A stretch of 63,493 bases of DNA, the filler included, from Choristocarpus tenellus KU-1152 (taxonomy: Eukaryota; Protista; Phaeophyceae), in the NCBI GenBank assembly GCA_964200185.2. It is 7 parts of 7 records of this genome, joined end to end, with 100 filler letters (N's around TTAATTAATTAA, not from the genome) between each part and the next. Parts side by side here need not be neighbours in the genome. Positions count along the whole stretch, not along the records: positions 44,026 to 63,493 come from CAXNAD020000463.1; 6 more parts are not named here. One strand, written 5' to 3'. Both the position numbers and the translations under genes were made by a program. Below the pieces are notes generated by a model. That model was not told the origin of the DNA. It ran no database searches and saw only the letters and a program-made list of their open reading frames with translations. Positions 44,026-63,493 of the stretch are shown here, one piece after another (positions within the stretch are counted from its first letter, which is position 1; each line of letters begins with the position of its first letter).

Positions 44026-44166
44026 TATACATTATGAAAAGGTGTGTCTGGAACAAGGATATTGACACTTACTAACAAACATGATAGCCAAAATTACATC
44101 AAAATCACAACATTGGATTTTGACCCCCAAATGGACACCGCTCTACCCTCTAAGACACTTTGGCTC
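44026..44166. mobile_element. MITE family B partial copy (reverse orientation)
   Basis: Ends CTCTACCCTCTAAGACACTTTGGCTC. Confidence 0.75.
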
Positions 44167-45767
44167 TATTCACATTTTTAGAGTGAGTGAGCTTGCATAA
44201 CATGCTATGATTTAACCAGCATTTGTGTCAATCTATTTTAACCGGCTGGTCATGGGTGAAATGTAACATGGCCAGGTTTCTGACTGGGCTGGTACAAACA
44301 AGTTCAAACATAGCTGAGTCCATGGTGATCAATTATTTCAACATGACCAAACCCTGGTCAGCAAGGTACAAACAGCAAGAAATTTCAGAACGCAATTCTT
44401 GGCAACACTACTGCAGTATTGTGTACTTAACAAGGGGGCTTTGGAAGGAGATTAAAAAATGCTACCTATCCCAAGAGGCATAAAGAATAGTGAGCTGGGG
44501 TTTTCTATATCTTCCAAAGCTGGTAACTTGGTTGGGGAGAGATACTGCCACCTTCCTGAGCTGCACAATCTAGAGTTTGAATCAGAAGGGTAAAATATGG
44601 GATGACTTCTGTGAAGACAACACATGCAGCAGAGTTTTGACATTCACCCAAACAAAGAGTCCAAGTGCTAAAGCACTCAAGCTATGGTTCATCATCGCAA
44701 ATCAGATTGTGCATGGTGGCACTTTGAAGGTTGGTAGCATTTCTAAGCTGGGTAGATCATTGGACAGAGATGTAGCTCCTTTAGACATGATGAAGTTAAT
44801 CCATCACCAACAACCTGTACATACACACTAACGATCCGCCAGAATGACATCAAACTCAGAGAATACAGCAACAACTACACTACATCATACCAGGACCACA
44901 CATTGGGTAGATAAAGTATGGGTCAAGGACAAGTGCCTTACGGACTCCACCCGCACCCTCAGTTCACTTCAACATCCACTGATGGACTTAAAGAGCAGTG
45001 ACCAAATGGGCAGGCAGGGGACATATTCTACACCAATCAGCAGGATTTTGCACCATGTTCTTTAACTGTCAATACACACCTCCCACCTATTGCAAACCCT
45101 GGATTAGTGCCTAAGGCACATGCACGGTGTTAACGCGTTATCTCAGAGAAAGACTATTGAAGAAGGGCATCAATATCATGAACCCAATTTTATAAACTTT
45201 AGCATTTCTATGCACTACATTTGTGCCTATTTTGAACTTTCAATGGAAAATTGGTATTGTCCACATACAGAGTAAAAGGAGCATATGATATATTTTTGAT
45301 ACAACTTGCGCAGTCACCACACCTCATTTCAAGGAATTTTGTTCGAGTGCAGAGTTAGCAGTTCCGGTCCTACACAACTAAGAGTTTGTGAAGGGACTTC
45401 ATGCCCAGTATGAAGGCCACAATGCCTTCATACTATGCACGGTTTGGCAAAGCCTGTTGAAGGTGTACAACACCATACTGAAGTCAACATCAACTTTGTC
45501 ATTGTGTATGCGGGAGAAACAGCAGAGCATAAAGGGACAAGAAACTAGCCTTCGGTGAAAAACTTGAACTCCCAGGCTACTTTAATGTTGTGGACTGGTT
45601 GGTGGATAGGACAGTGATTGTATATCTATGGTCTAACGAATGCCCAGGAATCCAAATTTGCTACAATAATCTTTTTTAAATGCCTCCATCAGGAGTATAT
45701 CAATGAAATGCCAGGCTCTTGATAAGAAGGTAGCAAATACTTCAAACACAATTTTTCCCCTACACAC

Positions 45768-48700
45768 CTTCCCGCATCCTCTTGAGCAAGTTCTTCATAC
45801 GGCCTTCTGTCGTCAGGACCCATTTTTTGCCATCGGTCTCCCAAGACCTTACTGATTTCTGTGATCTTCAGATCAGGCTGTTCTGCCTTGACCTAATCAA
45901 TTCAAAAATGAAATGCACTGTCAATTTCTTGTTGTCAGATTGGGTGCAGATCTGCTTATCATTTCATTCTCATGTGTGTGTTCCCAATCAATGGTCACCT
46001 GCCAGCACAGCACATGCATCCTTGCCCATGGTGCGTGCATGTCCAACAAGAGTCAATGACATGAAACTGTGGTTGCATGTTCAGTCTGTTCTTGCAAAAA
46101 AGTAATTAGGGCAATATGGAAGTAGGCTGAGTTTTAATTATGCCCTCATTTTCCCCACTCTCACCTCAGCTCGCTTAGCTTGACTAAATTGCATGAAGGC
46201 GGTTTTTCTCCCCTTCGGTGCATTGGGATCCTTCTTCCGTTTCTTTGTTGGTGTTGGTGTTGGCGTTGGTGCAGAACGATTCTCATGTCCTGCTGGGCGC
46301 TGAAAAGAGAACCAAGAAAAGAGCTTTAATACCCAAAGGTCATTTTGACGACAAATTGCACACCAAGGGAATCACTCGTTGAAGGTGGAGAGGCATGGAT
46401 ATCTTATGTGTATTCAAAACATGATCAGCGAGCAGAATTTGCAACATATTCACACCATTCAATTAATGTGAACAAGCACCCTGAAATTAAAAACCCCAGA
46501 AGACAAACTCCCTTCTGATCATAGTACAAACTGCTAGAAGTGGGCACTTACGCCATGACAGGGTTGAGGGGTGACCAATTTTCTTTTTGCGTATCTGATT
46601 CGACCTACAATTACAAGTACACATATATATATATATCCAGCACATCTTTAACTCTACTTCCCACCTTTGGTTTCTTTTCTTTGGCCTTTTCCTTTTCCCT
46701 CTTCCTTTGCTTTTCTTTCTTCTCCTTTCTAGCCTTCTTTTCTTGTTTCTCCTCTTCCTTCTTTTCTCGTTGCTCCTCTTTCTCCTCTTCACTCTCATCA
46801 CTGTCCCCTTCCCCAGAATCAGATCCGGATGCTCCTCCAGCATCACTCTCGCTTGGAGGAGCATAATCAGCATCCTCAGAGCTCTCACCATCCTATACAA
46901 ATACAAACAACAAGATAGGTACATGTCTTGACAACACGACAACAGAACTAACCCCAACCTCAAGTACACAACTGCTGTAGGTGAAGGTTTGTATCATCAT
47001 ATAACCTCAAATGTCAATATGCGTCATACATATTTGCACTTATACAAAGAACTTGTAGATATCATTTGAGAGAACATCTATACCAACTGGCATACATAGC
47101 ATTGGGGACTCCAGTGGCAATGTCTGCAAAGCTTGAGCACACAGGGAGTCCTGAGCACACACTTATCAAATTGTGGTGTCTTTTATGACCTTCCACAGGA
47201 ATGCACCACCTTGACAGTCTTCACAACCGTATAAATGTCAGGAATACTTCACACATGAGTATGATTTAACATGCACAACACCTACATATGTACATGCAAT
47301 CAACATCTTTGTACAACCTTCACAAGACAACAGCCCACTTAGCCACACAAAAAAGCAGAGAACATCCCTCTGGAACCAATCCTGCTCATCCATGTCCCAT
47401 TCAGTGGAAACAAAATTCACCTGATCATTATCGTCCATGGCAGCTCTGTATGGGTCATGCTCGTCCAGGTCTCCCAGTTGTAGCATAGAGTTTTCATTGC
47501 TCTGCTTTATGTTTTTGATCCTCAGCTTCTTTGTGCGTAAAAATTCATAGAGTGAGTCATATTCCGGGCGATCAATGCCACTGAAGGTGTAAGGCTTCCG
47601 TGCCTCCCCCGCAACAGACTTGAGTGATACACACAAATCGAAGTTGCGGGTCACTCCAGCTCCCTGGAGAAAGAAATGTGGTCTCAAGTTATGTCATCCA
47701 CCAGCAGTCCAAGCCATCTAACACCCAACTATCAAGTTTGTCTTCAGAAGTGAACACCCACTCCTTCTGTACTCTACATTACACCAATTACTATGCAACC
47801 AACCTTGTGTAGCCAATAGGAATAATCTTGATATAATGTTGAATTAAGTTATCAATTATCAACATTCCCAAGGTGTGAAGTGGGGACTATATCGGAGGGC
47901 CTCTTGGGGACATTCAAATCCTAACCCTAATATCTATAGCAAAAGTATCAATATAAATATCAAAAACTGGAAATTTCACAGGTTGCTCTTGCATTGCATA
48001 AATGAATACAGCAATAAAGTAAATAAAATGTGTGAACACTTCATTGTTCATTTCCAGTTTTTACGAAGCCCACATTCTCAGTCCAGTTGCTTGGCACCAT
48101 ACACCATTGACTCCTTAAAATACTCCCCTGAACTTTGAACACAATCAGAGCCTCTGAGGTGTTAGTTTCTATACCCTACCACCAATGACTTTCACTCTTC
48201 TCAAGTCCATATACGTTTGGGAGCCTTGGGTAAATAATGCGGGGCCTCTTGGCATACTACACATGAGGGAAACCATGATAAATGAAAAAGTGTCATACTC
48301 TGCTTGGATTCACAAACAAGTCAACAAGTCACAGAATTAATCATAGTTCAAGGTTTACCCTTATGATAGGGATACAGTTGATCACCGGACCAGAATACCT
48401 AAAAAGATCACTGGATAATAGATACATCAATCTGTTTGAACAAGACTAATAACATGACTCTTCCATTGCATCATGACTGCTCTTGTGAGTCATTCTCCAT
48501 TTCAACCCTACAAGCGTACACATTTCATATCATCGGTAGTTTCAGCATCATTGCAAGTCTCAAAAACTGGATACTTTCTTGGAAGCATGTGTCAATCTTT
48601 TTATCATAATCACACAGTGCAATGCATTTCATTATCCCCACAGCCTGGATGGGAAAAGACTTGCCTCTCCAACTAAATTCGTACCAGCTGGTACCTACTA

Positions 48701-51700
48701 GATCAAAAATGTATGCAAGATCTCAACACTGCAACAATTAGTGTCGGAAATAGATATACTTCTGGCAGCATGACTAAATCTTCAACTATCACAAGCTTAA
48801 GTTTTCTAAGATGACATCAGAGGCTTTACGAAAGACCAAGGTATCTCCTTCAACTTTTAGTCTTACGTCATTTAGGTGATTTGTATAGTACTCACATTTT
48901 TTTATTGTCCTTCAGTTTACATTCATAAAAGATATCCACAAACCATTAATAACTCATGGGCACAACAAATCACATAGTCACAAGGAGGGTAAAGAGGTGA
49001 AGCCATTATGGGGCACCAACAACTGGCCAGTGGGGAATATGGGATATTGTTTCTATATTCCTTTACTCAACTTCATAAACCATACACCTCAAAGTAGCAA
49101 CACCAAAAATGTTCCAGGTGACATCATTATTATTAAAAATGCAAAATTTTAATTAATCAAATGTCGTACCTGTACATACCTGAGCACCTCCATAGCGTTG
49201 GAACTCAACAGCATCGATCTCATCAAAGCTGATGATGCAAGTTGGCTTGTGGATGAAAATGAACGACTGTGCAATAGTTGGAATAAACAAAGAATTAAGA
49301 GAAATAATTAGAAGATGGTATATAAATTTGAACTCCTGGAACATGAAGCTTTCTAATTTAGCTGTCCTACATGTATTCTACCAGGCCATTAGCCACCACA
49401 TACCTTATTGAGGGGGTATAGATGCCCCTTGTTGGCACCCAGTGCACACTCCACAGCCTTGGCCCCATTGACACTACTAAACTTCCCAGTGACATAAACT
49501 GATTTGCCTGAAAGCACCTTAAACACCTACAGCAGTTGCAAAGAAGTATATTTTCAGAATGAGCACCTGACCACATATCATGACATAGTGATGCGAGACC
49601 TGGACGATTTACACCCCAGAAAATTATTTTATCGACAATTGCAAAAGTGCTGGTTTTCCCTAACATGTTAAGGCCGTACAGGGATACATATAAGAGGAGA
49701 ATGACACAACCAGGAAAAATACAGTAGCTTAACAAGAACACAATAAAAAATCTAGAAGAGAAATGAGGGCATTGTGGGAAATAACATCCAAAACAGCGAA
49801 AACCCAGGCACAGCATGGGTCATATTTGGCATTGAACAATGGAAACCGTCATATTGAACTGTAATATTAACAAATATATTTGTAAAGAAAATGCAAAGCA
49901 TTGTAGCTATATCTTAAACAAATTCCACCGACAGGTACATTTGCTTGGACTGAAGAACACAACCAAAAAAACTTTGCTGGCACATCACCTACCTTGGCAA
50001 TCAGGTTGTGCAGGGGCCCTGTCATCTCGGAGTTGAGGTTCCCATTGTAGTTTTGCTTTAGGTCTTCCTCTGTCATGTTAACCACAATTGTGGCCTCATC
50101 CTGGTCATGCAGATCATGAAGAGATGGTGACACAAGTACAAGAAATGGGGCTACACAAGACAGTGGAGAGAGAGAGGTCATGGTGAGGTTTCATATTCTC
50201 ACCTTGATTGTCCTTAATACAAGATGCTGGTATCGCTGCTGTCCCTGGCGAATAGGTTTGTCCAGTGAAATGACAAAGGCCACATATCGCTCATCAGGTT
50301 TTTCCAGGAGGAAGAGCTTGGAGATATCACTATACTGGATTTTGTAGTCATAGCTGGATACAAAAATGTGCACAGAGTTCTCGAGTTTACATTGGTGCAG
50401 AAAAATATACAAGGGCTACACTCACAGAATGAACACAGTTGACAACACTCAGTATCCAACACCAAACTAACCCTAGCAAAGGAACAATTGGATCTATTTC
50501 ACACAGGAGCAGGACCTGTAGGGAGTTTTTTCAGAACGTTTCTAGCTTGGTTATGAGTAACGTGCACACTTGAACGGTAACGTGCACATGAGGAAAAAAA
50601 ATAATATGACAGCACTAATCATGACCTTGAAATAATTGAAATAATACAATACGGTCACAAATCTTCTAGATCGAGAAGCTGTCCAGTCCAGTCCTGAGTA
50701 CCTCTATTGACCTCAAGCAATCAAATTTCTCATCCTATCTATGTAGCAGCAAACATCCCACACTAGATGGCAAACCTGCTGCCATGCATACGCATGAAGT
50801 AACTGTACATCTCAATAGAATAGCGACCTCTTGGAGTGTCGAATGTGCCTTGACTTTGATCAAACTCCACAAGCACTTTCCCCTTGACATCATGAATGTT
50901 GGCCCTCTCCATCACCTACAAAGAACAAGCAAAAATACAAGGATGCACACTTGACTTCCCTAGACGTTTCAAGATCACAGGGTCCTGCATCATGCAATGC
51001 ACACCCTAACGCTGTACAAATGTTTTACTATAATATATAGTAGTCATGTGAAACATACCACTCCACATTATCGGTCTGTTTAAATAAGTTTGGGATTGAT
51101 GGATTTGTGTAAGGAACACAGAGTTATCATCGTCATTACGTTGAACTCAAGCAGAATATCAAGACTGCGAGAATACTGCCCACACCAAAAACAGTCATCA
51201 CCTCTTTTTGAAGCATTTCTGCTGGGGAAGGGCCATCTTCATCATCATATGTGTCAGGAAGAGTGACTCGGATTGCCACCAAGGAGTCCTGGATTATTTA
51301 GTTGAAAAATAATCAAATATAGTCAGGACATTACAGCAGCAGTTATCTCCACTGACCAGCTCCTACAACCTTGCTGTTTATGTGGTGTAACCTTTACCCA
51401 CAGCCATTTCTAGGATAATGAAATGATTTATTGCCACGATACTAGGTTGCTAAATAACACAGTACGACAACACAGATGCAGTAGAAGCGCTGGGCTGTTA
51501 CATGACGGAGATATCTTTACTTCTATGCACACTCACAAAAACAGGAACCTTATCCCTTACATAAGCGCCACAGCTGTCTCCAATATGCCGAAATACCTAC
51601 CTCAATTTGACCTGTGGCATCACTCTCATGAAACTGCAGCTCAACGTCATTGCTCTTTTTCGTCCCTGGCATGACACACTGGCTCACATCTTTGATGTTC

Positions 51701-52544
51701 AGGTCGAACAGTATCCTGCACACAGAAGTATCCACCAGTGTGGCAAGAGGGAATTTTTCGTCCTTGTTCTCAATCTCTACATATTGTAAGTTCTACTTGA
51801 ACTGCATTGCATGCCTCTTCTCCCAGGTTATCAGTAGGACACACAAAAACTTGTTACGGGTGAGTTGAGTGAGACGTCCACGGTTTATCCTGCCCATGCA
51901 CTTACTTATTGTCTGAGCTGAATACGATCATGTTGTCCAGAACGTCGAACTTTCCGTGGTTTCCACCTCCGCAGTTAATTTTTTCCTTTGTTAAGGAAAC
52001 GTCAACGCCCGACAGGAACTTGTCCACTCCTGCCTCAACGCAAATTCAGGTGCGGGGATGTCAACCTAGGTTATAGTTGCAATGACTATTGCACTGGCAT
52101 CCACCGAAAGATGATAATAAAGCCTTTTGGTAGAGCGTAGCTCGGAACGGGAATAATCACACACTACACTGAACAGAAGCATCGGTGGTTGATGGTACCG
52201 AGTGCAAACGCAGCACCTGAGTACTGGTCGTTAGTGAAGCCATCAAAGCGCACTGGGGGACCCTCCCCCTTCATGAAGAGGCGCAAATGGCAGTAATCTC
52301 CAAACTGTGCCCAACTCGCGTGTGAAAGTGAGCTCCATTTCACCCTTTTCGACCTGTATGAGGTGTAAAAGGGATATCTCGGGAAGTTATCGTTCGACAA
52401 GAAAGAGGTCATCAGAGAGTAGGCAATACACTGCGAGTCTCACGTGGATTTATCTGCTGATGTCCAAACAGCTTCATCTGGTGTAACCGTGAGCGAACCT
52501 AGACTGTGCCCCTGCACACCGATCCTTGGATAATCTCTGCTCAT
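45768..52544 (-). CDS. SSRP1: FACT complex subunit SSRP1 (POB3 homolog with C-terminal HMG box)
   Basis: 14 phase-consistent GT-AG exons: 52544-52444, 52353-52217, 52029-51906, 51715-51601, 51288-51202, 50915-50776, 50353-50203, 50100-49993, 49526-49404, 49266-49180, 47663-47421, 46892-46665, 46299-46165, 45892-45768. Diagnostic peptides: RFDGF, KSNDVELQFHE, TPRGRYSIEMY..MRMHGSSYDYKIQYSDISKLFLLEKPD, SLDKPIRQGQQRYQHLVL, GHLYPLNKSFIFIHKP, TRNFDL, YTFSGIDRPEYDSLYEFLRTKKLRIKN, an acidic/basic tract, and HMG box KKDPNAPKGRKTAFMQFSQAKRAEVKAEQPDLKITEISKVLGDRW. The terminal exon with the stop codon was not identified. Confidence 0.95.
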
Positions 52545-52703
52545 CGTTCCTTGTGTTGCTGGAAATTTAGATGATCTGAGATGAGTCCAAAACCTTTCAA
52601 TTTGGATGATACTCATAGCCACCTCGCACCTCCAGAGGAAGTTCTAACAACATGATTGGAATTTCTGTTAGGAGAGAGGTGATACGACTATTGGAGGGAA
52701 CAA

Positions 52704-52806
52704 GGAAGATGATGGCAGGTACTGCTGATTGGCGAGGGGAAAATGATGGAAGGTACTGCTGATTGGTGAGAGGAAGATGATGGCAGGCACTGCTGATTGG
52801 TGAGGG
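52704..52806 (-). promoter_or_regulatory. Three 34-bp tandem units, each with a CCAAT box, upstream of SSRP1
   Basis: CTGATTGG (CCAATCAG on the gene strand) at 52725, 52759 and 52793; unit GGAAGATGATGGCAGGTACTGCTGATTGGYGAG(G); ~180-255 bp upstream of the ATG. The regulatory role is inferred. Confidence 0.5.
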
Positions 52807-55800
52807 GCTTTTCCACCAACAAGTGGGAAAAGCGGCCAGTGCATCTTTCTTGCAGAATGTCGCCGCACTGCAAGTAAGCGTAGGTTTTGACGATGGGGAA
52901 CAGTTGTTCGTTGTCAACAACCCTTGAGATAATGGAATCCATTAGGCGAAAAACAAGGTAAACATGGAAGCCGTACAGAGGAGAAGGAAATGTATCCGAA
53001 TGTCGTGCATTGCAAATGAAAAAGATTGAGGATTGGGTAGTTGCCCACTTGAGAATCTGGAACAAAGAGGTCACTATTGAATGTTCATACAATGGCAATG
53101 AATGGTGTGAACGGGAAATGACATCCGGATACGCTACTGCTACGAGCCTATTCTATTGGATGGGATGTAATTGAACCTGAATAGATAAAACGGAGTGGAC
53201 TCCACGAAATCGAAAGCAGTGGATCTGTTGTTTGTTGGAGTGGGATCGAGGATGGAACAGGTAGAATCGTGTCCCAATAAGGGTGAACAAATGGAGTGTA
53301 TCGGGATTCGGCTGATGAAGGTTTAGTCCCTGCTAGCAGGCCCATGAAATACAGTCAAGCTCATTGTAGTAGGCTTTGCCTCAACATATCCTAGAGAGAA
53401 GTTTGAGAAAGCAGAGAAGAAAAGAGCAGAGGACAAGTTCTGTCCTGCATAAAACGGTAGAGCACTTTCCCTCTAAGGATAAACTCCTCCATGTCAACGT
53501 CCACGCTTGAAAGAGAGTTGCAGGGGGAGAGGATATAGGAACGGCTTGGCACTTGGAACCTTCACCAGGGATAAACTCAATGATAAGTTGTGTACCTCAC
53601 AAGGATTTTGGAGATGACTGAATTTGTTGAGACCTTTTTCAATTCGCTGGAGGATAAAGAGTCTCACACCAATGTAAATCCCAAGGGGGATAAATGTTAA
53701 AAACATTCTGAATTGTCTTTATTGTATTATTACAATATTCAAAACAATAATAGTGACGATGTGTATCTCGTCAAAAAATACGCTTACCAACCATGATGTG
53801 TATATTCGCTAAAATGGTATCCTCCTGAAGGAAAAAGCAGAGTGGGGGGTGGTCACCATTGGATTCCTAGTTAAGAGTAGGCCCTGTTGGACATTTCAGT
53901 GCCAGCAAACAACCCTTCAATACCATGGGGTCAAGTTGGAGAGACCTTACACAGAGTTGATCGAGATAAGTTACATAACTTCCTACAATGTATTTATGCC
54001 CGTCTACAAGAAGACTTAATCCCTCCATTACTGGGGAGACTTTTCTTGAGTTTACATATTGTCACTATTGTAAAAACATGTGTTTTGATGTTTGTTGGAA
54101 AATGCAAAAATCCATCACGCTGAATGAAAATAATTCAATTTAAGAGCTAAATTAGCATCTGAGACATATTGTTACCCCTACTCACTAATATGGAACAATA
54201 TATTTCTCAAGGGTGTTAATACAAATGACAAGAATTTAGGTATTTATGTAAGTTGAGGGATTTTTTGTAACACATTCAGAAAAATAGCGATACGTACATT
54301 CACATGTAAGATACACTCACCAACCTTCACTATGTGTGTACTTGGTCAGATATCCTCCAACAGAACAAATCAGAGTGAGAGGTGGTCATCATCAGGTTCC
54401 TCGTGAAGAGTAGGCCCTAGGACAGTTCAATGCCAACAATCCATCAACACAAAAGTAGCTTGGGTCAAACTCAGGTGTTCCATATACGGTAGTTGCTACA
54501 TCTGATAGATTTGGCGAACATGACTTGCTACAATGCAATGACATGTCTACAATACTCTACTTCATCTCTCTATATTTCAGCTTTTTAGTTAGTGTATGCA
54601 CCATCACTGTTGCTAATAATTCCTCTAAAAACATACTTCAAGAATCTTAGTGAGATAGACAATCTGTCACACACCCTAATATTGTAGAATATTTGCATCC
54701 ACCCCATATTGTAATGCCTACTCACTACTGTCATGTTCTGAATTATGTTACAGTGGAACACAGGGTTGTTAATATGCCGTTATTCTTATATACTATCATA
54801 ACATAAAAGGTATCTTGTGAAAATCCTGGATTCCAGTGGAGGATCTTCCTTGAGGCTGAGTCCATTGAATCTATACAAGAGACCAGTCCCACAAATGGTG
54901 GACCTCTCTTCATTCAGGGATACCAAAAGTCAAGAATCCCCTTTGATGTCACATCCCGTAACTCTCATGCAATCCTCTCCACTCTGCAGTCTTGCACTTG
55001 TCGAACCTTAACTTTGTCCCGTTCGTTACAGTTTCATCTTGGTTCGCATCTGGCCAATCTTGACTGATGGGTCTCTTCACCACCCTTGCCTGAGTTTTCC
55101 ACATGCCACAACAGAATTACGCAATTCACGGTGATGCTAATGAACTCCAATATTGGGTGAAAGGGACAGCTTCAACCTTCATGCCAGTTTGCCAAATACC
55201 AAAATCACACAACGCTGTCGCTGCCAATAACAAGATGTGTTGACAGAAGCTGATTATGAAGATGGTGATGGATGAAAGGCTGGTGACATTGTAAACATTC
55301 AGACCTTGGGTTCCCCCACCAGCAGAGTCCAGTTCAAGTTTGAAATCAAGCGCCTCATCATCATCTGGAGATGCTGAACATACTGATCCTGCACAAGGGT
55401 CTCCCATGTCCTTCCAAGGTGGATCTTAAGGGAAGATTTGGTGCTTCCACCACACCCCTTGAGCATAATGTGAGCTCAGGAAATTGTGACACTCATTGGG
55501 TCCTATTCCAGGACACCCCATCTTCCTCACAATGTTCTACAGATTGAGAGGTCATGTTCCAGGACCAATTTGGTGATGGTGTGCCTGGTTTTATAGTGAA
55601 TCATCTGATCAAATATATGAAGACCGACTTTGTGCTACCTCCATCGCTACAAACCTCAAGTTGGAATCTCGTCAACATGTCGGCCCAGATCATGTTCTCA
55701 CTCTGAAGGGATTCAATTGCAGCAACAGAACTAACGTCTACACACACAGGTGGATTGCTATTGGTCAGACTAGCCAACTACAGCCCATTCATCAGCAAGA

Positions 55801-57765
55801 CCGCCTGTGCTAGCTCTTTCTACAGGTGGTTCCACATCCCAGCCCCATCATCCAAACCAGCATGCTAAAACACCTGCTATGCAAAGTCATTTTGTAGACC
55901 AGTATCGTAGCATTCTGCAGTGTAAAATATACCAAAACTCAGGTTGCCAAGCAAATTGTCATGATGGTCAGTCATCATTCGTGCCTCAACAATCCCAAGC
56001 TACTTGTTGGCCATACTTGTATCAAAAGTGGAAGGGGTGTAGACACCAAGAGCACAAGGATAAAGACATTATGTGGATGATCACTACACTCCTTATCCCT
56101 AGAGGTGCCCAGATGGATTCAACTCCTGCCCTTTGGAGAATGATCATGGTTTAGGTGACACTCTCGTAAGGAGTGGCAAGAATCCTAGGTTGGCTCCAGT
56201 TGCACTACTTGCTTGTCAGACATTGTTTATCGCCCGCTCATCTGTCTGTCTCTCTGTATTTTTTTTTGCCTTCAGTTCAACCAAGGTTTCATGATAAATA
56301 ATCAAACTTGATTCAAGAACTCTTTGTGCAGAGATACCCATCTACTCCAAAGCCTTCACCTCTTTCACCACAAAGGGTTCATGTATCTGGCAGTGTTGAA
56401 GAACACAAGGAAGTGATGTACCATGTCTTTCAGAGGTACTTGTTTAATCACCCTCAACTCAAAAAAATGGATGTGCATCCTGTCCCACCTTTTCCATAAA
56501 TTTGCGTACTGCTAATGGTTAACCACAGCATATTTGTGGATGTATTCGTTTTTCTCTTACACTATGTGACGCCACAGTATATGTTGGAGCTTCAGTAATA
56601 TTCCCCAACTTGATCCCGATAAATATTGCTTGTAGCACTTGTTCCACAACAGATCATGCACCAATTCAGCAAGACATCACACAACAAGGCAATACATGAC
56701 AAGTACCTTTTACAAATACTACTCCTTCATGTTCTCTGGCAAGCATGCAATATGAATTATTTTGACCTTGTGCAAGTCCATTTACATAAACATAATAATA
56801 TTCCACCACCTGGTCATGAAATCATTGTCTGTTGCACAACTGCTCACATTCCCACCCCTTGATACTGCTGCTGTAGTGGACCCGATTGTACATTACATGC
56901 CTGAGGTAGACCAGCACAATGAACCCTAGCATAGGTGGAATCATAATGTGATGGGTCAAATTCTCAATACTTGAACAATACTAGATCAGTATTGGTTCAG
57001 TTGGCAAACCCCACCACATACAGGGTTTGTGTAAAACACCTTGGGATTGGTCACTCTGACCCCAATTTCTGATCAAATGACCAAAACTGTTATGCTCTGA
57101 ATACTGATTCTACCTGATTCAGTGAAGCTAGAAAGGAGTGCATTGAGCTTTCAGTAAGACATATACTTTCAACAATCAATTTCAAGAGTCTCAACTTGTA
57201 GGTCTGTCGTCTTGTTACAGATCGGTATTTCATCGAGTGCAGTAGAGCTGGACAGATGTTCACTACCTGAAGCAGAAATTCCAATAGAGCCTATACCAAG
57301 CCTTTTGATAGGAACTCTTACAGAGCAAACCCCTGTACTCTAGAAGTGATTGACTTATGTGTCACCATTATGGAAGAGTAAGGCATCATTGAAAAACGTG
57401 TCAGCCCTTGGGGTAGTCCTGCTACCACTGTACCTTATTCTGATTGCTCTCTACGTTTCTGTATAGGCTACCGCTGAACTGCCAACAAACATCTTGTTAG
57501 ACAGAGTTGGTCTATGCCTGAGATGGAATAAAGTACTAATACCGTGGTTGGTGTCAAATTTAGGACCGTTTGAAACATTCAGCGCGTGTATTGGCAGATT
57601 CCAGTTGCTGAAACCGATATTGATAAGGACTGCTTTTGTCACTTCCAGAAGCAAGAGCCTACTTTTTTCAAGGGAATGCCATTTGGGGTATCAAATCCTC
57701 TTTGGCAATCTCAAAGAATGATGTTGTTAGCCTTTTGTCAATTTTGGTCCAATTAGTAGTTTATA

Positions 57766-57975
57766 TGCTCCGTCTAACCCGTCTGATAGCCGATTCAAAC
57801 ATAAAAAAATAAGACCATAATTTAAATGATCACTAGCAATAAGTGCCATTGATACGATTCCACATACAAAACCAAAAACAGTAAGCGAATTAGCAGTGAT
57901 TCCAAGAAACTGTAACCTCTTACCAATTGTATCCAAGGGCTTATCTATTACCTTTCTAACTCTTGAATCCAACAT
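57766..57975 (-). pseudogene. Bacterial CDP-alcohol phosphatidyltransferase family gene (YnjF-like), 5' fragment truncated at the integration junction
   Basis: MLDSRVRKVIDKPLDTIGKRLQFLGITANSLTVFGF...LNRLSDGLDGA: TAN.LT and DGLDG motifs; intronless, very AT-rich. Residues after GA in the ORF track come from host RT antisense sequence. Confidence 0.85.
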
Positions 57976-58354
57976 AGATCATTTTCTAGATAATTATGGT
58001 AATTTCATAAGGTCATAAATTTTATGTAAAGTATTTTCAGTGACTGGTTTGTCTAAAAATTTATAACAAGTTCTGTCTTGAAAGACTTTTTTTAGAGTTC
58101 TCATACTATTTCCTATATATTATTGATCTTGCACTAGTTTTCGGGGTACATTGGGTTAAGCAGACATCTAACTAGAATCATAGAAATGAGATATTGCATA
58201 ATTAATAGTCGAATGTCTACGTTTTCTATTATAGTAACATTCTATATATTCTACAATTGAAGATTTTGCTAATTCTCTGGTGTAGTAATTTTTATCATGA
58301 ACCAGTTCTACCTTCTTTATTATATAATTAGAAGATTGAGAGGGAGTATAGAAA

Positions 58355-58597
58355 ATGGATTTTAATTTATCAAAAAAACTGTCGGACTACATATGGATAA
58401 ATGGAAATATGATTCCTTGGGATGATGCATATATTCATGTTTTAACTCATAGTCTTCATTATTCTGGTGCAGTATTTGAAGGAGAAAGAGCTTATGATGG
58501 TAAAATCTTTAAGTTAATGGAGCACAGCAGTCGGCTAATTAAGTCTGCACAAGCAATGCATTTGAAAGTAAATTATTCTATAGATGAGATTAGTCAG
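58355..58597 (+). pseudogene. ilvE: Bacterial branched-chain amino acid aminotransferase (class IV), 5' fragment
   Basis: [54 protein letters not shown]; purine-rich Shine-Dalgarno-like GAGGGAG upstream; truncated at about codon 81, before the catalytic Lys. Confidence 0.9.
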
Positions 58598-61500
58598 TGG
58601 ATTTGATCGCTTGTTCTCAAACATGGAAAGGGCATGTGCACTACAAGAACAGCAGTTCAAAACATTTATAACCAGCAAATTTAACCTTGAAACTGTCAAA
58701 TAATATATTTGGACCTAAAGAAGTCCATTATTTGGGTCAGGTTTTGTCGTCTGAAGGGATTCGTATCAGCGAAGATTGAATTCATGCCATCACTGAATTA
58801 TCTAAACCCAGAACTTCGTTCTGTCCTAGGTATGGACTTTTTTGTGTAAATTTATACTCAATCTAGCCACAGTCATCAAACCATGGGATCGTCTTACAAA
58901 ATAAAGTCTCAGTAAGAACATTGCTAAGGAATGGGGAATGGACCAGGATGTGGCATTTTTCGAAGTAAATATCTATTAGCTGCAGCCCTGTTTCTCGTAT
59001 CTTTCTGATTTTACCAAAGAGTTTGTTGTCCATGTTGATGCCAGTGAGGGTGGTGGTGCTGGAGGTTTTTAGCACAGCCCTGAGCTAATAATCCGAATGA
59101 ATTAGCATAGAACGCAGAATACCGGTAACATCCCTGCTAGTGGGGGTATCGCATGTGAAGCTTATGATTTCACTGCCAAACACAAGCCTGGTTGGTAAAA
59201 GCTAAATGTTGCGCCTGACACTCTATATCAAATACTCAAGTTCGAGGAACAACAGAAATCTGTCCCTCTGATGCTGGTACCCATCTTTCGTAATGTACCC
59301 AGTGGTAATCGTTCATTTACAGATATTTTCAGTCCCCTGTGTCATCCCAATACCTGATAAGAAAACAATTGTGTCTATGTCTTGCTTTTCCTTCGTAATG
59401 GCTTACTGTACTGTATCATCATATTTACCAGCTCATCTTCATAAGAGAACATTTAGAATCCAGTTGGTTGTTCCCCACTTCTTAGTTCATCTTGTACTCC
59501 ACGGGTCCTGACCATGCATTGTCTGGAGGCCACTTAGGTTTTGAACACCCGTTTGTTCAGGCACAGCACAACAAAACGAGTAAGATGATCAATGATAAAC
59601 AAGACGTACAAGCACATTACACCATTTGCTGCTGGGGAACGTGTTTTGTACTCTATCAACCAGTAGTACAAGCTTGAAATGGTTTGTCAACAGGCATGTG
59701 TGACCAGCGGGAAAAACGGTACTTTGGTGTGATGAGTCTTACGCACTTGGTATGCCTGACAATCACGGCACCATGCACAAACATCAAGTTAAATGTTGGC
59801 CACCAACTTTAGTCTCTGATCCTATTCTACTCAAAGAGGCCGTGACAATTGCTCATATGCTGGTAGAATGTGTATTTTCAATTTTATAATTAGTGGGCAC
59901 CTATGTTGTTTAACTCTGATCAAGGTGCCAAGTTTTAAAACCGTATCGTTGCAGATTATCAGTCTGTCTATTTGTTGTACGAAAACCAAAACCACGCCAT
60001 ATCACCCTCAAGAAAACGTTTTGAAGAGAGTACATGCTATGTTGCATTCTATGCCAGCAATGTGCATCTCCGTTGCTGAAGACAACTGGGCATTGTTACT
60101 GTCTTTCGTACAGTTAGCCCATAACAAACCTTTAAGTGCAAAGTTGCATGAAACCCCATTTTTTCTTCTTCTTTGGAAGACATGCTCGTTTACCTGTTTG
60201 ATATTATCCTTAGTTCATCTAACGCTGATTCGGATGTTTCTACTGAAAGAGCTTACTCGCAAACCAAAGAGAATTTACAGCTTGCATTTGAGTTGGCACG
60301 CAGTAACTTCTGTGAACTGAAGATGTTGATAACCAGGAATGGGCCAACCAATGTCTCGTGTTCCTCATTTTCGTACCTGGATACAAAGTTCTCTAGTCCA
60401 TAGGCGGCTGCAGGAGAGTAATGATCGTCCGAATCTGAAGTTACTTCACCTTCGGAGGGGTCTGTATGAAGTACACTATAAAGTATTACTCATCATATCC
60501 AGGGGCGTACTACCAGGAAACCTACGTCAATTTTCTGTTCTTTTGGGTAGAATAACCTTTTACTACCCCCAAGTCCTATTTCCCACACCAGAGACTTGAA
60601 ACTAATTATTTGTTTTGGAAAAACGGTTACCCTTGCCAGATATAGACCATCAATCCTCTCAACCCATTGTTGGCCAGTCACTGTTATAACGCTGTTGTAC
60701 ATAGCTCAACTCTCCTTGTTTCGCATGAGTGAACACATGCGATGGTGAAGAGACCGTCAAAATACTGGGTACAAAAGCACTCTTGTATGCTAGACGTGGC
60801 TGTTCATTACACCATGTCGTGTTTTCATCAAATGTATTTATTGATCATCATGAAATGACCAACTTCAACTAAGACAAATATTCAAGTTTACGGCTGGTAA
60901 GTGATGGAGACTTCAGGTGAGTCATATTCGTTCTTCGTTTTATTTTTGGACATGATCCCCCTGACATGATGCGATGGCCTTACCATCGCCTCATATCATA
61001 TTGAGAGTTGAGCTACCAAAATTGTCCGTCTTAGTGTCCACTTAGAACATTGTGGTAATTGTGAGCAATTTTTCCGATCTTATCAGAAGGTGAGGAAGGA
61101 AAAATGTCTACACATCAGTCATTCATCTTGTCTGCTGTGTTGATTTTGATCATGTCATACACATGCTATTGGTTTCACACATTAGAGTGTTAATAAAAAA
61201 AAATGATGCAACACATGTTTAGCGTCATCAGAAATGCTACTCACAATTGTAGATAGGGTAAAGCGTTTACTCAATGTCTCCCCATTCTTGAGTATCCTCT
61301 GTTTTTACAAGATGCAAGAGACCTATATACTGATCCCATATCATCTCGACTCACAATTAGGCTGACCGCATTGCTGGCCCCATGCCCTCAAACCTTGAGG
61401 TTGATGATGCTATGCTGACCATATTCCATCGACCTTATAATATTTGGGCGGGTCAATGTGCTGGTCTCATACACTCAGATATTGTAAGGCTTGATTGCTA

Positions 61501-63060
61501 TGCTGAAAACATATCATCAACCTTTGCCTAAAAAGTTCCTGATCAGATGTTCATTAATGCCACGTTCATATATTCTGCTTCATGTTGTACTAACGAAGGC
61601 GTGTAAATATAATGGTGCAATAGTATGAATTATTATGGAGGGAACTAGTAACCAAGAATTTCTAAGTATCTTCTGGAATATATGTGCAACAAAATACTAA
61701 ATATGGTTGGAAATATGGATCCAATGTACTTGGTGAATTGAGGTCCTAACTCCACGTGGAACCCGAGATACGTGCTGTTTTAGACCAAATTTGAGCCTAA
61801 TACTTCAAACCCACAAAGTAAACTGGAGGCATTCAAACCGCTACCAAACCTGTTACAGGTCGATTAATCCCATGAAATGCTCTTGGAATCAATGCTGGCA
61901 TCCTAATGTGTCAAAGAAGCTATAGTAGCACCTTTGACCCACAATTCAGCGCACAATAGCGTGTACATTATTATTTACTGGGAGTAGTTATGTTCCTGGG
62001 GGTATCTTTGTTGTTTTCATGTTAACACGGTTGCTTTACCTGTTCATGATGTGAAAACCTAGGTCACTGGAATGTTGATATACACAGTACTCCTAGGACA
62101 TATTTTTGGTGGCTCAAGTCGTTTTGGTGGCAGTGTAGAACATTTCAAGTACAAATTCCGTGAAGGACTGAGTATACTTGGAGTACAGTGAGTACTCCGA
62201 GTGTTGCTGGGCCGTCTTTTGATATTTCATTATTACATTTCAGGAGGCTCAGATTTTTCACCTTCGATGTTGTCACTGATGCCATCTTCGACATCGAGGT
62301 CAACCTCATCATCCCCCTTCTACAGCATCAATTGGTCTCGCTAACCTGTCCATATCTTCCAGCTTACCCGAAATATTTGTACGGTTGAATATGTCTACCT
62401 CCAATATCTTGTCCTCTGCCTTGATGTATTTTGTGTTCTCCCTCTGGGCATGGGCAATCAATGTTGGCTTTATTACAGCCAAAGACAGATTGCCACTCTT
62501 CAAAAATGGTGCCACAGTCTGCTGGTTTCGATCCACCCTCAATCTGATCCCAGGTAGGGTCACCATACCAAACAATCTTGTCTGATTTTTCAATTGGACT
62601 CATATTTTCCCCTTTGCATACCGAAAAGATGGCGTACTGTTTCCCGTGCTACCAATACACCTCTTTGGGCTGAAACTTGGGCATATAAGGTGGTGCCCAA
62701 ATCACATCCCAGGCCTTCTCATGAATACCTCTACCCACCCAAAGAGCTTGTCTGGTTATTGACTACTGCAAAAAATTCTTCTCGCAACGACAACCTCCTC
62801 CTTACTCAGGTCTTTCCCTCAACACAAATTATTACCCTTCAAAAGGTCGCCCCCCATGGTTGGCACTCAAAACTGTGGTCTTCCCTCCTTCGCCTACTTT
62901 TGGTTGCTTTCACCTTGCTGCCCAATAGGTCTGTCTTGCACCCTTATTAAAGTCATGGTTGTACAATGCGTTGTCGAGATACAATATCGTTTTCTTCCCA
63001 AGGTACTATAACATGAATGTTTGTGTAAGGCATTTCACCTTCAACTGGATAAACATCTCA

Positions 63061-63315
63061 GAGCCAAAACAATTGAGATATAGGCAGGGTTGCATTTTAA
63101 GGATCCTGGGAAAGGGCAAGAAAACATAATTTTGTACGATTGTACAGTCTCCGCCTAATTTTGTTGTCGCTTTGTGTGTGTAAAGAGGAAATATCAATTT
63201 TATGTACACTATTGTGCACATAAAGTAATGAAGTAGAGCATATTGCATAGGATACGAAACATGGCTTAGAACGCAAAAACGTTCAAACTTGCCAATCTGT
63301 CAATTGTTTTGGCTC
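63061..63315. mobile_element. MITE family E, copy 2
   Basis: GAGCCAAAACAATTGAGAT ... GTCAATTGTTTTGGCTC TIRs; exact TSD CTCA. Confidence 0.8.
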
Positions 63316-63493
63316 CTCATCATCCATTGACACATGGTAATCACTCTTGTTCTAGCCTGGATAAGGGCCAACTAGATATTTAGAGATAGGGGACACGTCT
63401 TACACCGACTTGAAGTCAAACCAAAGACTTTCACCCCCTTACATCATCACAAGTAAACTCCAAACATAGAAAGAGGGGTCAAAGTATCTGGGG

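Follow-up and report, generated by a model that had tools for sequence, protein, structure and literature searches.

The window analysed here is the whole 63,493-nucleotide stretch of DNA from Choristocarpus tenellus KU-1152 (assembly GCA_964200185.2), of which positions 44,026 to 63,493, referred to below as the piece, come from contig CAXNAD020000463.1. Within this piece lies an AT-rich island at 57766-58597 that is very probably genuine bacterial DNA, taken up by a nuclear chromosome in the recent evolutionary past, built as a three-piece mosaic and without present function. The pieces, A, B, and C, are 235, ~314, and ~283 bp long, lie in mixed orientation, and carry parts of four bacterial genes, all of them truncated: a CDP-alcohol phosphatidyltransferase, a RutE-like nitroreductase, an IS3 transposase, and ilvE. 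The features of the insert, with coordinates along the window, are as follows.

57766-58597, no strand assigned: whole bacterial insert (composition; junction-crossing contigs of sequencing runs X9 and X10; ends of reads from metagenome X1; pieces A, B, and C)
57766-57975, minus strand: gene part of piece A, the N-terminal 70 codons of a CDP-alcohol phosphatidyltransferase (PF01066, NF040950, relatives, X1 reads)
57976-58000, minus strand: rest of piece A, a native 18-nt spacer and the stop codon (57994-57996) and last codons of a Pyr_redox/ferredoxin-NADP-reductase-like gene (X1 read; relatives)
58001-58104, minus strand: first part of piece B, the N-terminal 35 codons of a RutE-like gene (malonic semialdehyde reductase/nitroreductase family; NF003768)
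58105-58167, minus strand: spacer of piece B, with an AGGAAA ribosome-binding-like motif and the probable outer end of an insertion sequence (IS; ...TGCA near 58128), as suggested by reading the sequence
58168-58314, minus strand: last part of piece B, the C-terminal ~48 codons and stop of an IS3-family transposase (rve_2, transpos_IS3, tblastn)
58315-58354, plus strand: leader of piece C, the native ilvE upstream region with the Shine-Dalgarno-like GAGGGAG at 58340-58346 (DNA similarity to the relative L082; motif from the sequence)
58355-58597, plus strand: gene part of piece C, the N-terminal 81 codons of ilvE, coding for a branched-chain amino acid aminotransferase of fold type IV (NF005726; trees; relatives; X1 read)

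The 832-bp island has a GC content of 0.309, compared with a mean of 0.419 ± 0.026 and a minimum of 0.357 among 340 other 832-bp segments of the same piece, and the dip to 0.29 to 0.31 spans 57.8 to 58.6 kb. The outer edges can be fixed exactly at 57766 and 58597, as metagenome reads identical to the insert lose their match right there. Two open reading frames (ORFs) extend over the junctions, on the minus strand at 57727-57975 and on the plus strand at 58355-58606, and the chance of open frames of 70 and 81 codons at the same base composition is ~0.003 and ~0.001, respectively; stop codons are absent from all four gene fragments. The exact products of both ORFs had no match on record in look-ups, and no further bacterial islands, tRNAs, Rfam families, or LTR-like (long terminal repeat) sequences were found in the rest of the piece. 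An earlier note on this DNA had described an AT-rich island of ~830 bp with two bacterial gene starts whose frames stay open up to the junctions, and both descriptions stand, the island at exactly 57766-58597 and the gene starts through profile matches; it had also held the genes to be truncated and non-functional, which applies to four fragments rather than two.

The insert is physically continuous with nuclear DNA, and read-derived sequences support its junctions. A search of sequencing runs identified two runs of the source organism (organism A) that contain the stretch, X9 with 0.99 and X10 with 0.52 of the sampled words, and their Logan k-mer contigs, which are built from reads independently of the assembler, were compared with 57000-59400. 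In X9, a 749-nt contig (57388-58136, depth 26) crosses the left junction and a 620-nt contig (58159-58778, depth 37) crosses the right one, both with 0 mismatches and each passing its outer junction by 180 to 440 nt. The second sample, X10 (~7x), provides an 851-nt contig (57596-58446) across the left junction, also with 0 mismatches and at a depth of 7 throughout. The check for junction-spanning sequences that the earlier note had called for is thus answered at both junctions in X9 and at the left one in X10. So is its check for equal coverage: neighbouring unique contigs in X9 have depths of 19, 30, 23, and 27, similar to the 26 and 37 of the insert contigs; there is no coverage step, and the insert is present at host single-copy depth, as far as mean contig k-mer depths, a coarse measure, can tell. 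Mismatch-free junction contigs at single-copy depth make an assembly chimera unlikely.

We note that X9 contains additional sequence related to the insert. A second, 88-nt ilvE-like contig (58342-58430, depth 31) differs at 58373, where Lys7 becomes Glu, the residue of the relatives, and at four third codon positions (58381, 58384, 58387, and 58390); it is absent from X10. There is also extra depth (57 to 81 versus 26) over 58053-58214, in the RutE-like and IS3 parts, together with the contig break at 58136-58159, and this too is not seen in X10. These sequences may come from a related live bacterium in the sample, or from further inserts or IS copies.

The bacterial origin of the insert is established by four gene-family matches and by the placement of its IlvE fragment. 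The 81-codon frame matches the IlvE model NF005726 (E 3.6e-30, profile positions 10 to 81 of 295) and scores above the cut-off for Pfam Aminotran_4, and the GAGGGAG motif, 8 nt ahead of the ATG, bears out the Shine-Dalgarno-like sequence previously proposed there. The frame leaves ilvE at 58597 and lacks ~210 C-terminal codons, far from the ~290-amino-acid full domain with its pyridoxal phosphate-binding lysine that a functional IlvE has. The nearest kin of the IlvE fragment, found in protein libraries, are a TARA ocean scaffold (L082), the closest, and a contig from Ectocarpus sp. 12 (L087). In nucleotide sequence, piece C is 87% identical over 205 nt to the former and 82% identical to the latter; in amino acid sequence, the corresponding values are 93% to the IlvE-like part of the TARA scaffold and 89% to the Ectocarpus sp. 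12 AP-2014 product. The best matches in a scan of one genome per species are to the Rickettsiaceae single-amplified genome (SAG) AH-545-L11 (74%), a name with no match in our literature search, and to an unclassified alphaproteobacterial metagenome-assembled genome (73%), with Rickettsiaceae DT_105 at 64% and Ca. Megaera at 56 to 60%. An IQ-TREE phylogeny of 42 rows puts the fragment in a clade supported by 96/94 that is nested within one supported by 98/99, and the labelled members of both are all Rickettsiaceae: SAG AH-545-L11, DT_105, two Ca. Megaera, and an uncultured Rickettsia. A quick tree of 83 rows agrees (support 99), with compositional outliers flagged among AT-rich rows; the trees place 81 residues only, and the taxon labels are the submitters' own. 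A bacterial, Rickettsiaceae-like origin, as the earlier note had it, is therefore borne out by the IlvE tree.

The 544-bp TARA scaffold abruptly loses the ilvE frame after codon 54 (at 443-544, ...KIFKL then IVVAVHAKGMQ...). This could reflect chimeric scaffolding or, alternatively, a further truncated or transferred copy residing in an ocean eukaryote. In the Ectocarpus sequence (GCA_964200275.2, contig CAXNAL020059059.1, 1-1115, GC 0.30), ilvE and a response regulator gene are arranged as in bacteria, and NCBI lists the product as a protein of Ectocarpus; the contig probably belongs to a Rickettsiaceae-type symbiont or contaminant that went unflagged in the Ectocarpus sp. 12 AP-2014 assembly.

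The minus-strand frame of piece A (57766-57975) matches the NCBIfam archaetidylinositol-phosphate-synthase model NF040950 (E 6e-10) and Pfam CDP-OH_P_transf, PF01066 (E 5.5e-4, slightly below the gathering score, profile positions 3 to 47 of 152), and its amino acid identity is 74% to P0173 (locus L088), 71% to P0174 (L089/L090), and 61% to L083. The frame breaks off within the DG(x)2AR signature, ending ...DGLDGA where the relative at L088 goes on VARASELSDFGAFLDIVSD, and thus has neither the full DG(x)2AR(x)8G(x)3D(x)3D signature nor the approximately six membrane helices of a functional CDP-alcohol phosphatidyltransferase. In four of four relatives (L083, L088, L089, and L090) a Pyr_redox gene (ferredoxin-NADP-reductase-like) lies 6 to 28 nt upstream and is co-directional, with C-terminal ends of ...HFEYSTTKCASK* in L089/L090, ...STSKCSTAK* in L088, and ...STMKGVDKK* in L083; such ends before the phosphatidyltransferase among relatives include ...HFEYSTMKGVDKK* and ...STTKCASK*. 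Beyond 58000, where it ceases to match the window, the X1 read encodes ...STTKCAGNKKP* on the phosphatidyltransferase strand, an end of the same kind. The window retains just the last two codons and the stop of the Pyr_redox gene (57994-58000). As a side observation, P0174, the second-closest phosphatidyltransferase relative, which occurs in two separate metagenome assemblies (L089 337-594 and L090 271-528), has 85 amino acids and ends directly after DGLDGAVAS, with an opposite-strand gene after it in L089; this phosphatidyltransferase gene may be truncated in its bacterium.

Piece B begins with a RutE-like frame that is fused in frame to the P codon and stop of piece A. Residues 4 to 35 of the fragment align with profile positions 14 to 46 of 200 in NCBIfam NF003768 (E 2.4e-5), Pfam Nitroreductase reaches only E 0.19, and the homology ends at the same base where the X1 read diverges. 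The transposase part matches Pfam rve_2 (E 3.6e-8) and NCBIfam transpos_IS3 (E 1e-7, profile positions 325 to 363 of 369), with no second end and no inverted repeat found in the piece; an active IS3-family element would have a full transposase with its DDE core and two terminal inverted repeats, which this remnant does not. Between the transposase stop and the RutE-like ATG lie 63 nt that could hold both an IS end and a ribosome-binding site, and the IS end and the RutE-like gene may together be one native piece. When the RutE-like fragment and the DNA at 58001-58354 were compared with all fetched loci, matches were at chance level except for the leader in L082. The IS3 part was also considered as a guide to taxonomic affinity and dropped, its best tblastn match among annotated plasmid IS3 transposases being to Francisella at 70%.

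The two gene starts had been taken for a native divergent pair with its own intergenic region, and of this description the gene starts stand and the native pair does not: the 379 bp between them are not a spacer and contain two more gene fragments and two internal joints. An OmpR-type response regulator lies upstream of and divergent from ilvE in five relatives (L001, L002, L081, L082, and L087), and the phosphatidyltransferase is preceded by Pyr_redox in four relatives and the X1 read, so the two genes are not neighbours in the donor. A tblastn search with the phosphatidyltransferase fragment against the 4-kb flanks of 80 ilvE loci found nothing, and the native pair was rejected on these grounds: a response regulator beside ilvE in all close relatives and a phosphatidyltransferase absent from 80 ilvE flanks. 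The joint between A and B is not native, because the RutE-like homology stops exactly where X1 diverges into Pyr_redox. Similarity to L082 (87%) and IS3 homology both start at 58314, and we read ~58314/58315 as a second internal joint, since a transposase broken in its middle and abutting the ilvE leader is unlike the product of an IS insertion; this joint between B and C presumably formed at integration.

A single donor for all pieces is plausible. The loci L081 (ilvE, 80% identical IlvE) and L088 (phosphatidyltransferase, 74%) come from one ENA sample, ERZ505383, at coverage ~1.0 to 1.3, on separate contigs and with different neighbours, which fits one relative genome that has both loci apart and is probably a genus-level relative of the donor. 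We assign piece A to the donor of piece C because of its AT-richness and its co-occurrence with C in both X1 and ERZ505383.

A bacterium nearly identical to pieces A and C exists today. The hydrothermal-vent metagenome X1 has short, low-depth records that match the insert at 57766-57946, 57957-58000, and 58475-58597 with 2, 0, and 0 differences, respectively, or 2/348 nt in total, both differences being at third codon positions in piece A. These matches end exactly at 57766, 58000, and 58597 and then run on with other sequence, which beyond 58597 stays in frame (ASKDILKKN, where L087 has ATKDVLKKN); the X1 ilvE is intact. A bacterium ~99.4% identical to pieces A and C is thus present either as a free-living organism or in another host, and with so similar an extant donor the transfer is recent. 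Third positions also account for 16 of the 19 differences from L082 and 31 of the 45 from L087, which argues that almost all of the divergence arose in bacteria and not in the nucleus. That the insert has decayed far less than the repeat around it is upheld by the same comparison, with 2/348 nt separating it from an environmental bacterium, both at third positions. Metagenomes X2 to X8 (soil, sponge, and aquatic, from five studies) contain 5 to 7% of the sampled words of 57300-59100, and if these words come from the insert the donor lineage is widespread.

The surroundings of the insert are those of a nuclear chromosome, with the following features.

57243-57765, plus strand: left flank, a decayed high-copy retrotransposon-like repeat that ends ...VVY plus 'a' at a YxDD box recognized by eye (X9 word depth; stops)
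58598-59400, plus strand: right flank, where the repeat resumes with 'tg' plus DLIACS... and continues into an RNase H-like region (X9 depth; RT_RNaseH_2)
47238-52622, minus strand: SSRP1 (FACT subunit), an intron-rich host gene ~5 kb from the insert (phmmer; exon-like ORFs; relatives with PF08512)

The presence of intron-rich SSRP1 on the same contig anchors it as nuclear; one exon matches human SSRP1 residues 379 to 463 (phmmer, E 3.5e-7), and the minus-strand exons at ~47.2 to 52.6 kb agree with the earlier placement of this gene nearby. A search with the SSRP1 exon returned unnamed Logan and ENA fragments at 71 to 80% identity, and the ESM Atlas gave generic FACT clusters only. The flanking repeat, described before as riddled with stops, indeed has stops in every frame, and its copy number is very high (word depth up to 10^4), X9 word depth reaching 13,000 on the left and 9,800 on the right. 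By eye, the repeat appears to be an LTR-retrotransposon reverse transcriptase with an RNase H region after it. The last letters of the left flank are gta gtt tat a and the first ones of the right flank tg gat ttg, such that a codon and its motif resume across the insert, and this suggests a clean insertion without target loss. The insert itself also begins with TG, either a 2-nt overlap or chance.

We propose that three short fragments from non-adjacent loci of a marine Rickettsiaceae-type genome were strung together and ligated at a double-strand break within the putative reverse-transcriptase gene of a retrotransposon copy that may have been dead already or may have died later. End-joining repair would have captured the fragmented bacterial DNA, apparently with no loss of target bases, and the donor would plausibly have lived inside the host. 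Capture by end joining is suggested by the mixed orientation of the short fragments, the mid-frame gene cuts, the blunt or near-blunt joints, and the intact target. No function is expected for any of the four truncated genes.

Several points weigh against this interpretation. Neither piece A nor piece B has a labelled close relative, and the assignment of B to the donor of C rests on AT-richness. No native counterpart of the joint between B and C was seen, unlike for that between A and B, and this joint could date from the donor. X9 is possibly the assembly's own sample, and X9 and X10 provide contigs rather than raw reads, which show that junction words recur often and do not show the whole insert on one molecule; 58136-58159 lies in no listed contig, and the right junction is missing from X10. 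That the target is a reverse transcriptase was read by eye, and Pfam finds nothing there.

The mosaic might instead have been made in a degenerating, IS-ridden symbiont strain, where deletions and IS-mediated rearrangements brought the four gene remnants side by side before one contiguous 832-bp fragment moved to the nucleus. IS-driven rearrangement is known from Rickettsiales genomes, the insert contains an IS3 remnant, and in X9 the extra depth and the contig break close to the IS end suggest that there are further IS copies. We nevertheless consider this origin unlikely, as the bacterium 99.4% identical to A and C keeps both the Pyr_redox-phosphatidyltransferase order and a continuing ilvE, and two internal deletions wrecking Pyr_redox, the RutE-like gene, the transposase, and the response regulator would be needed in a near-identical strain; both internal joints, moreover, cut genes mid-frame, as random end joining does. 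An artefact of assembly or library, in which bacterial reads were mis-joined to a host repeat, is brought to mind by the position of the insert in a high-copy repeat, where assemblers are prone to error, by the unflagged bacterial contig L087 in another algal assembly, and by the second, slightly different ilvE-like contig in X9. It is very improbable in view of the junction contigs with 0 mismatches at depths of 26 to 37, like those of the unique flanks, and of the left junction in a second sample; the insert is also three truncated pieces and not a stretch of bacterial genome, and the reading frame of the repeat resumes exactly across it. Near-identity to X1 reads that continue as intact bacterial genes similarly leaves hardly any place for an indirect route through a giant virus, a nuclear insert of another eukaryote, or a mobile element. 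Such a route would account for the lack of a demonstrated symbiont in the host, and the abrupt end of ilvE after codon 54 in the TARA scaffold hints that truncated copies may exist elsewhere, but no viral or foreign eukaryotic sequence occurs at the joints, and at single-copy depth the insert was not spread by the repeat.

Direct capture by the host nucleus is therefore the reading we prefer, and it can tentatively be extended. The host possibly harbours, or harboured until very recently, a marine Rickettsiaceae lineage that continues to shed DNA into the nucleus, this locus being one of many, although we regard this as doubtful. That lineage might then perhaps be common to the Ectocarpus assembly, the TARA scaffolds, and, in nearly identical form, the vent metagenome, and the variant contig and IS-region depth in X9 could conceivably represent a live symbiont strain or further inserts. 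If such shedding does occur, the system would be a marine-eukaryote counterpart of that of Wolbachia and its hosts, at an early stage.

Rickettsial DNA in eukaryote nuclei is already known, and what distinguishes the present case is its base-exact junctions, mosaic build, and extant near-identical donor. The nucleus of Volvox carteri contains ~9 kb of Rickettsiaceae DNA with four syntenic genes (2015, PMC4324946). Both are Rickettsiaceae DNA in a eukaryote nucleus, taken as the footprint of a present or lost endosymbiont, with algal Megaira-type symbionts as relatives; in place of ~9 kb of syntenic DNA, however, there are here 0.83 kb in three non-syntenic pieces with four truncated genes and marine relatives, and no endosymbiont-bearing sister strain is known. 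Rickettsial DNA is also reported in the mitogenome of the fern Haplopteris ensiformis (PMC10027690). On that account Rickettsiales-derived DNA is likewise fixed in a eukaryotic genome compartment, the recipient being the mitochondrial genome there and a nuclear chromosome near SSRP1 here. Our literature search found no report of Rickettsiales inserts in brown algae or their relatives.

Wolbachia nuclear transfers in insects and nematodes are mostly non-functional fragments, often in or near repeats, with sizes up to whole genomes, and have been validated by junction-spanning reads and host-like coverage. By analogy, the insert would resemble these in its Rickettsiales donor, non-functional fragments, and repeat setting, although the bacterial family and the hosts are others and a single small mosaic is involved. 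Mitochondrial and plastid inserts in nuclei are mosaics of short, non-adjacent fragments end-joined at double-strand breaks, with differently oriented fragments, little or no target loss, and 0 to 2 nt of overlap at the joints. The multi-fragment build seen here appears similar, with a bacterium as donor instead and a repair route suggested by anatomy alone.

The locus is thus a base-exact case of bacterial DNA capture in which both outer junctions and one internal joint are defined, and a near-identical donor in hand is rare, inserts of this kind being mostly old and of unknown donor. It points to a eukaryote-associated lineage of marine Rickettsiaceae that is as yet undescribed and that includes the contig listed under Ectocarpus proteins, and the insert could serve as a heritable marker of infection, past or present, in the host. 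It is also a warning that neat-looking gene starts may be patchwork and could be mis-annotated as host genes. No new mechanism and no functional transferred gene are added by it.

The repeat that received the insert is recognizable mainly by short motifs read by eye: YWQIPV, MPFGVSN, VVY-M|DLIACS (interrupted at the bar), and VHVDAS. Pfam was silent on ten stop-free pieces of the flanks except for RT_RNaseH_2 (E 0.064) at 58980-59069, and a PDB phmmer search with the flank repeat found nothing. Raw reads of the unrelated organism B from the same study (X11) match only at 59007-59047, a 40-nt core near VHVDAS at <90% identity, and this is a retroelement segment conserved across organisms.

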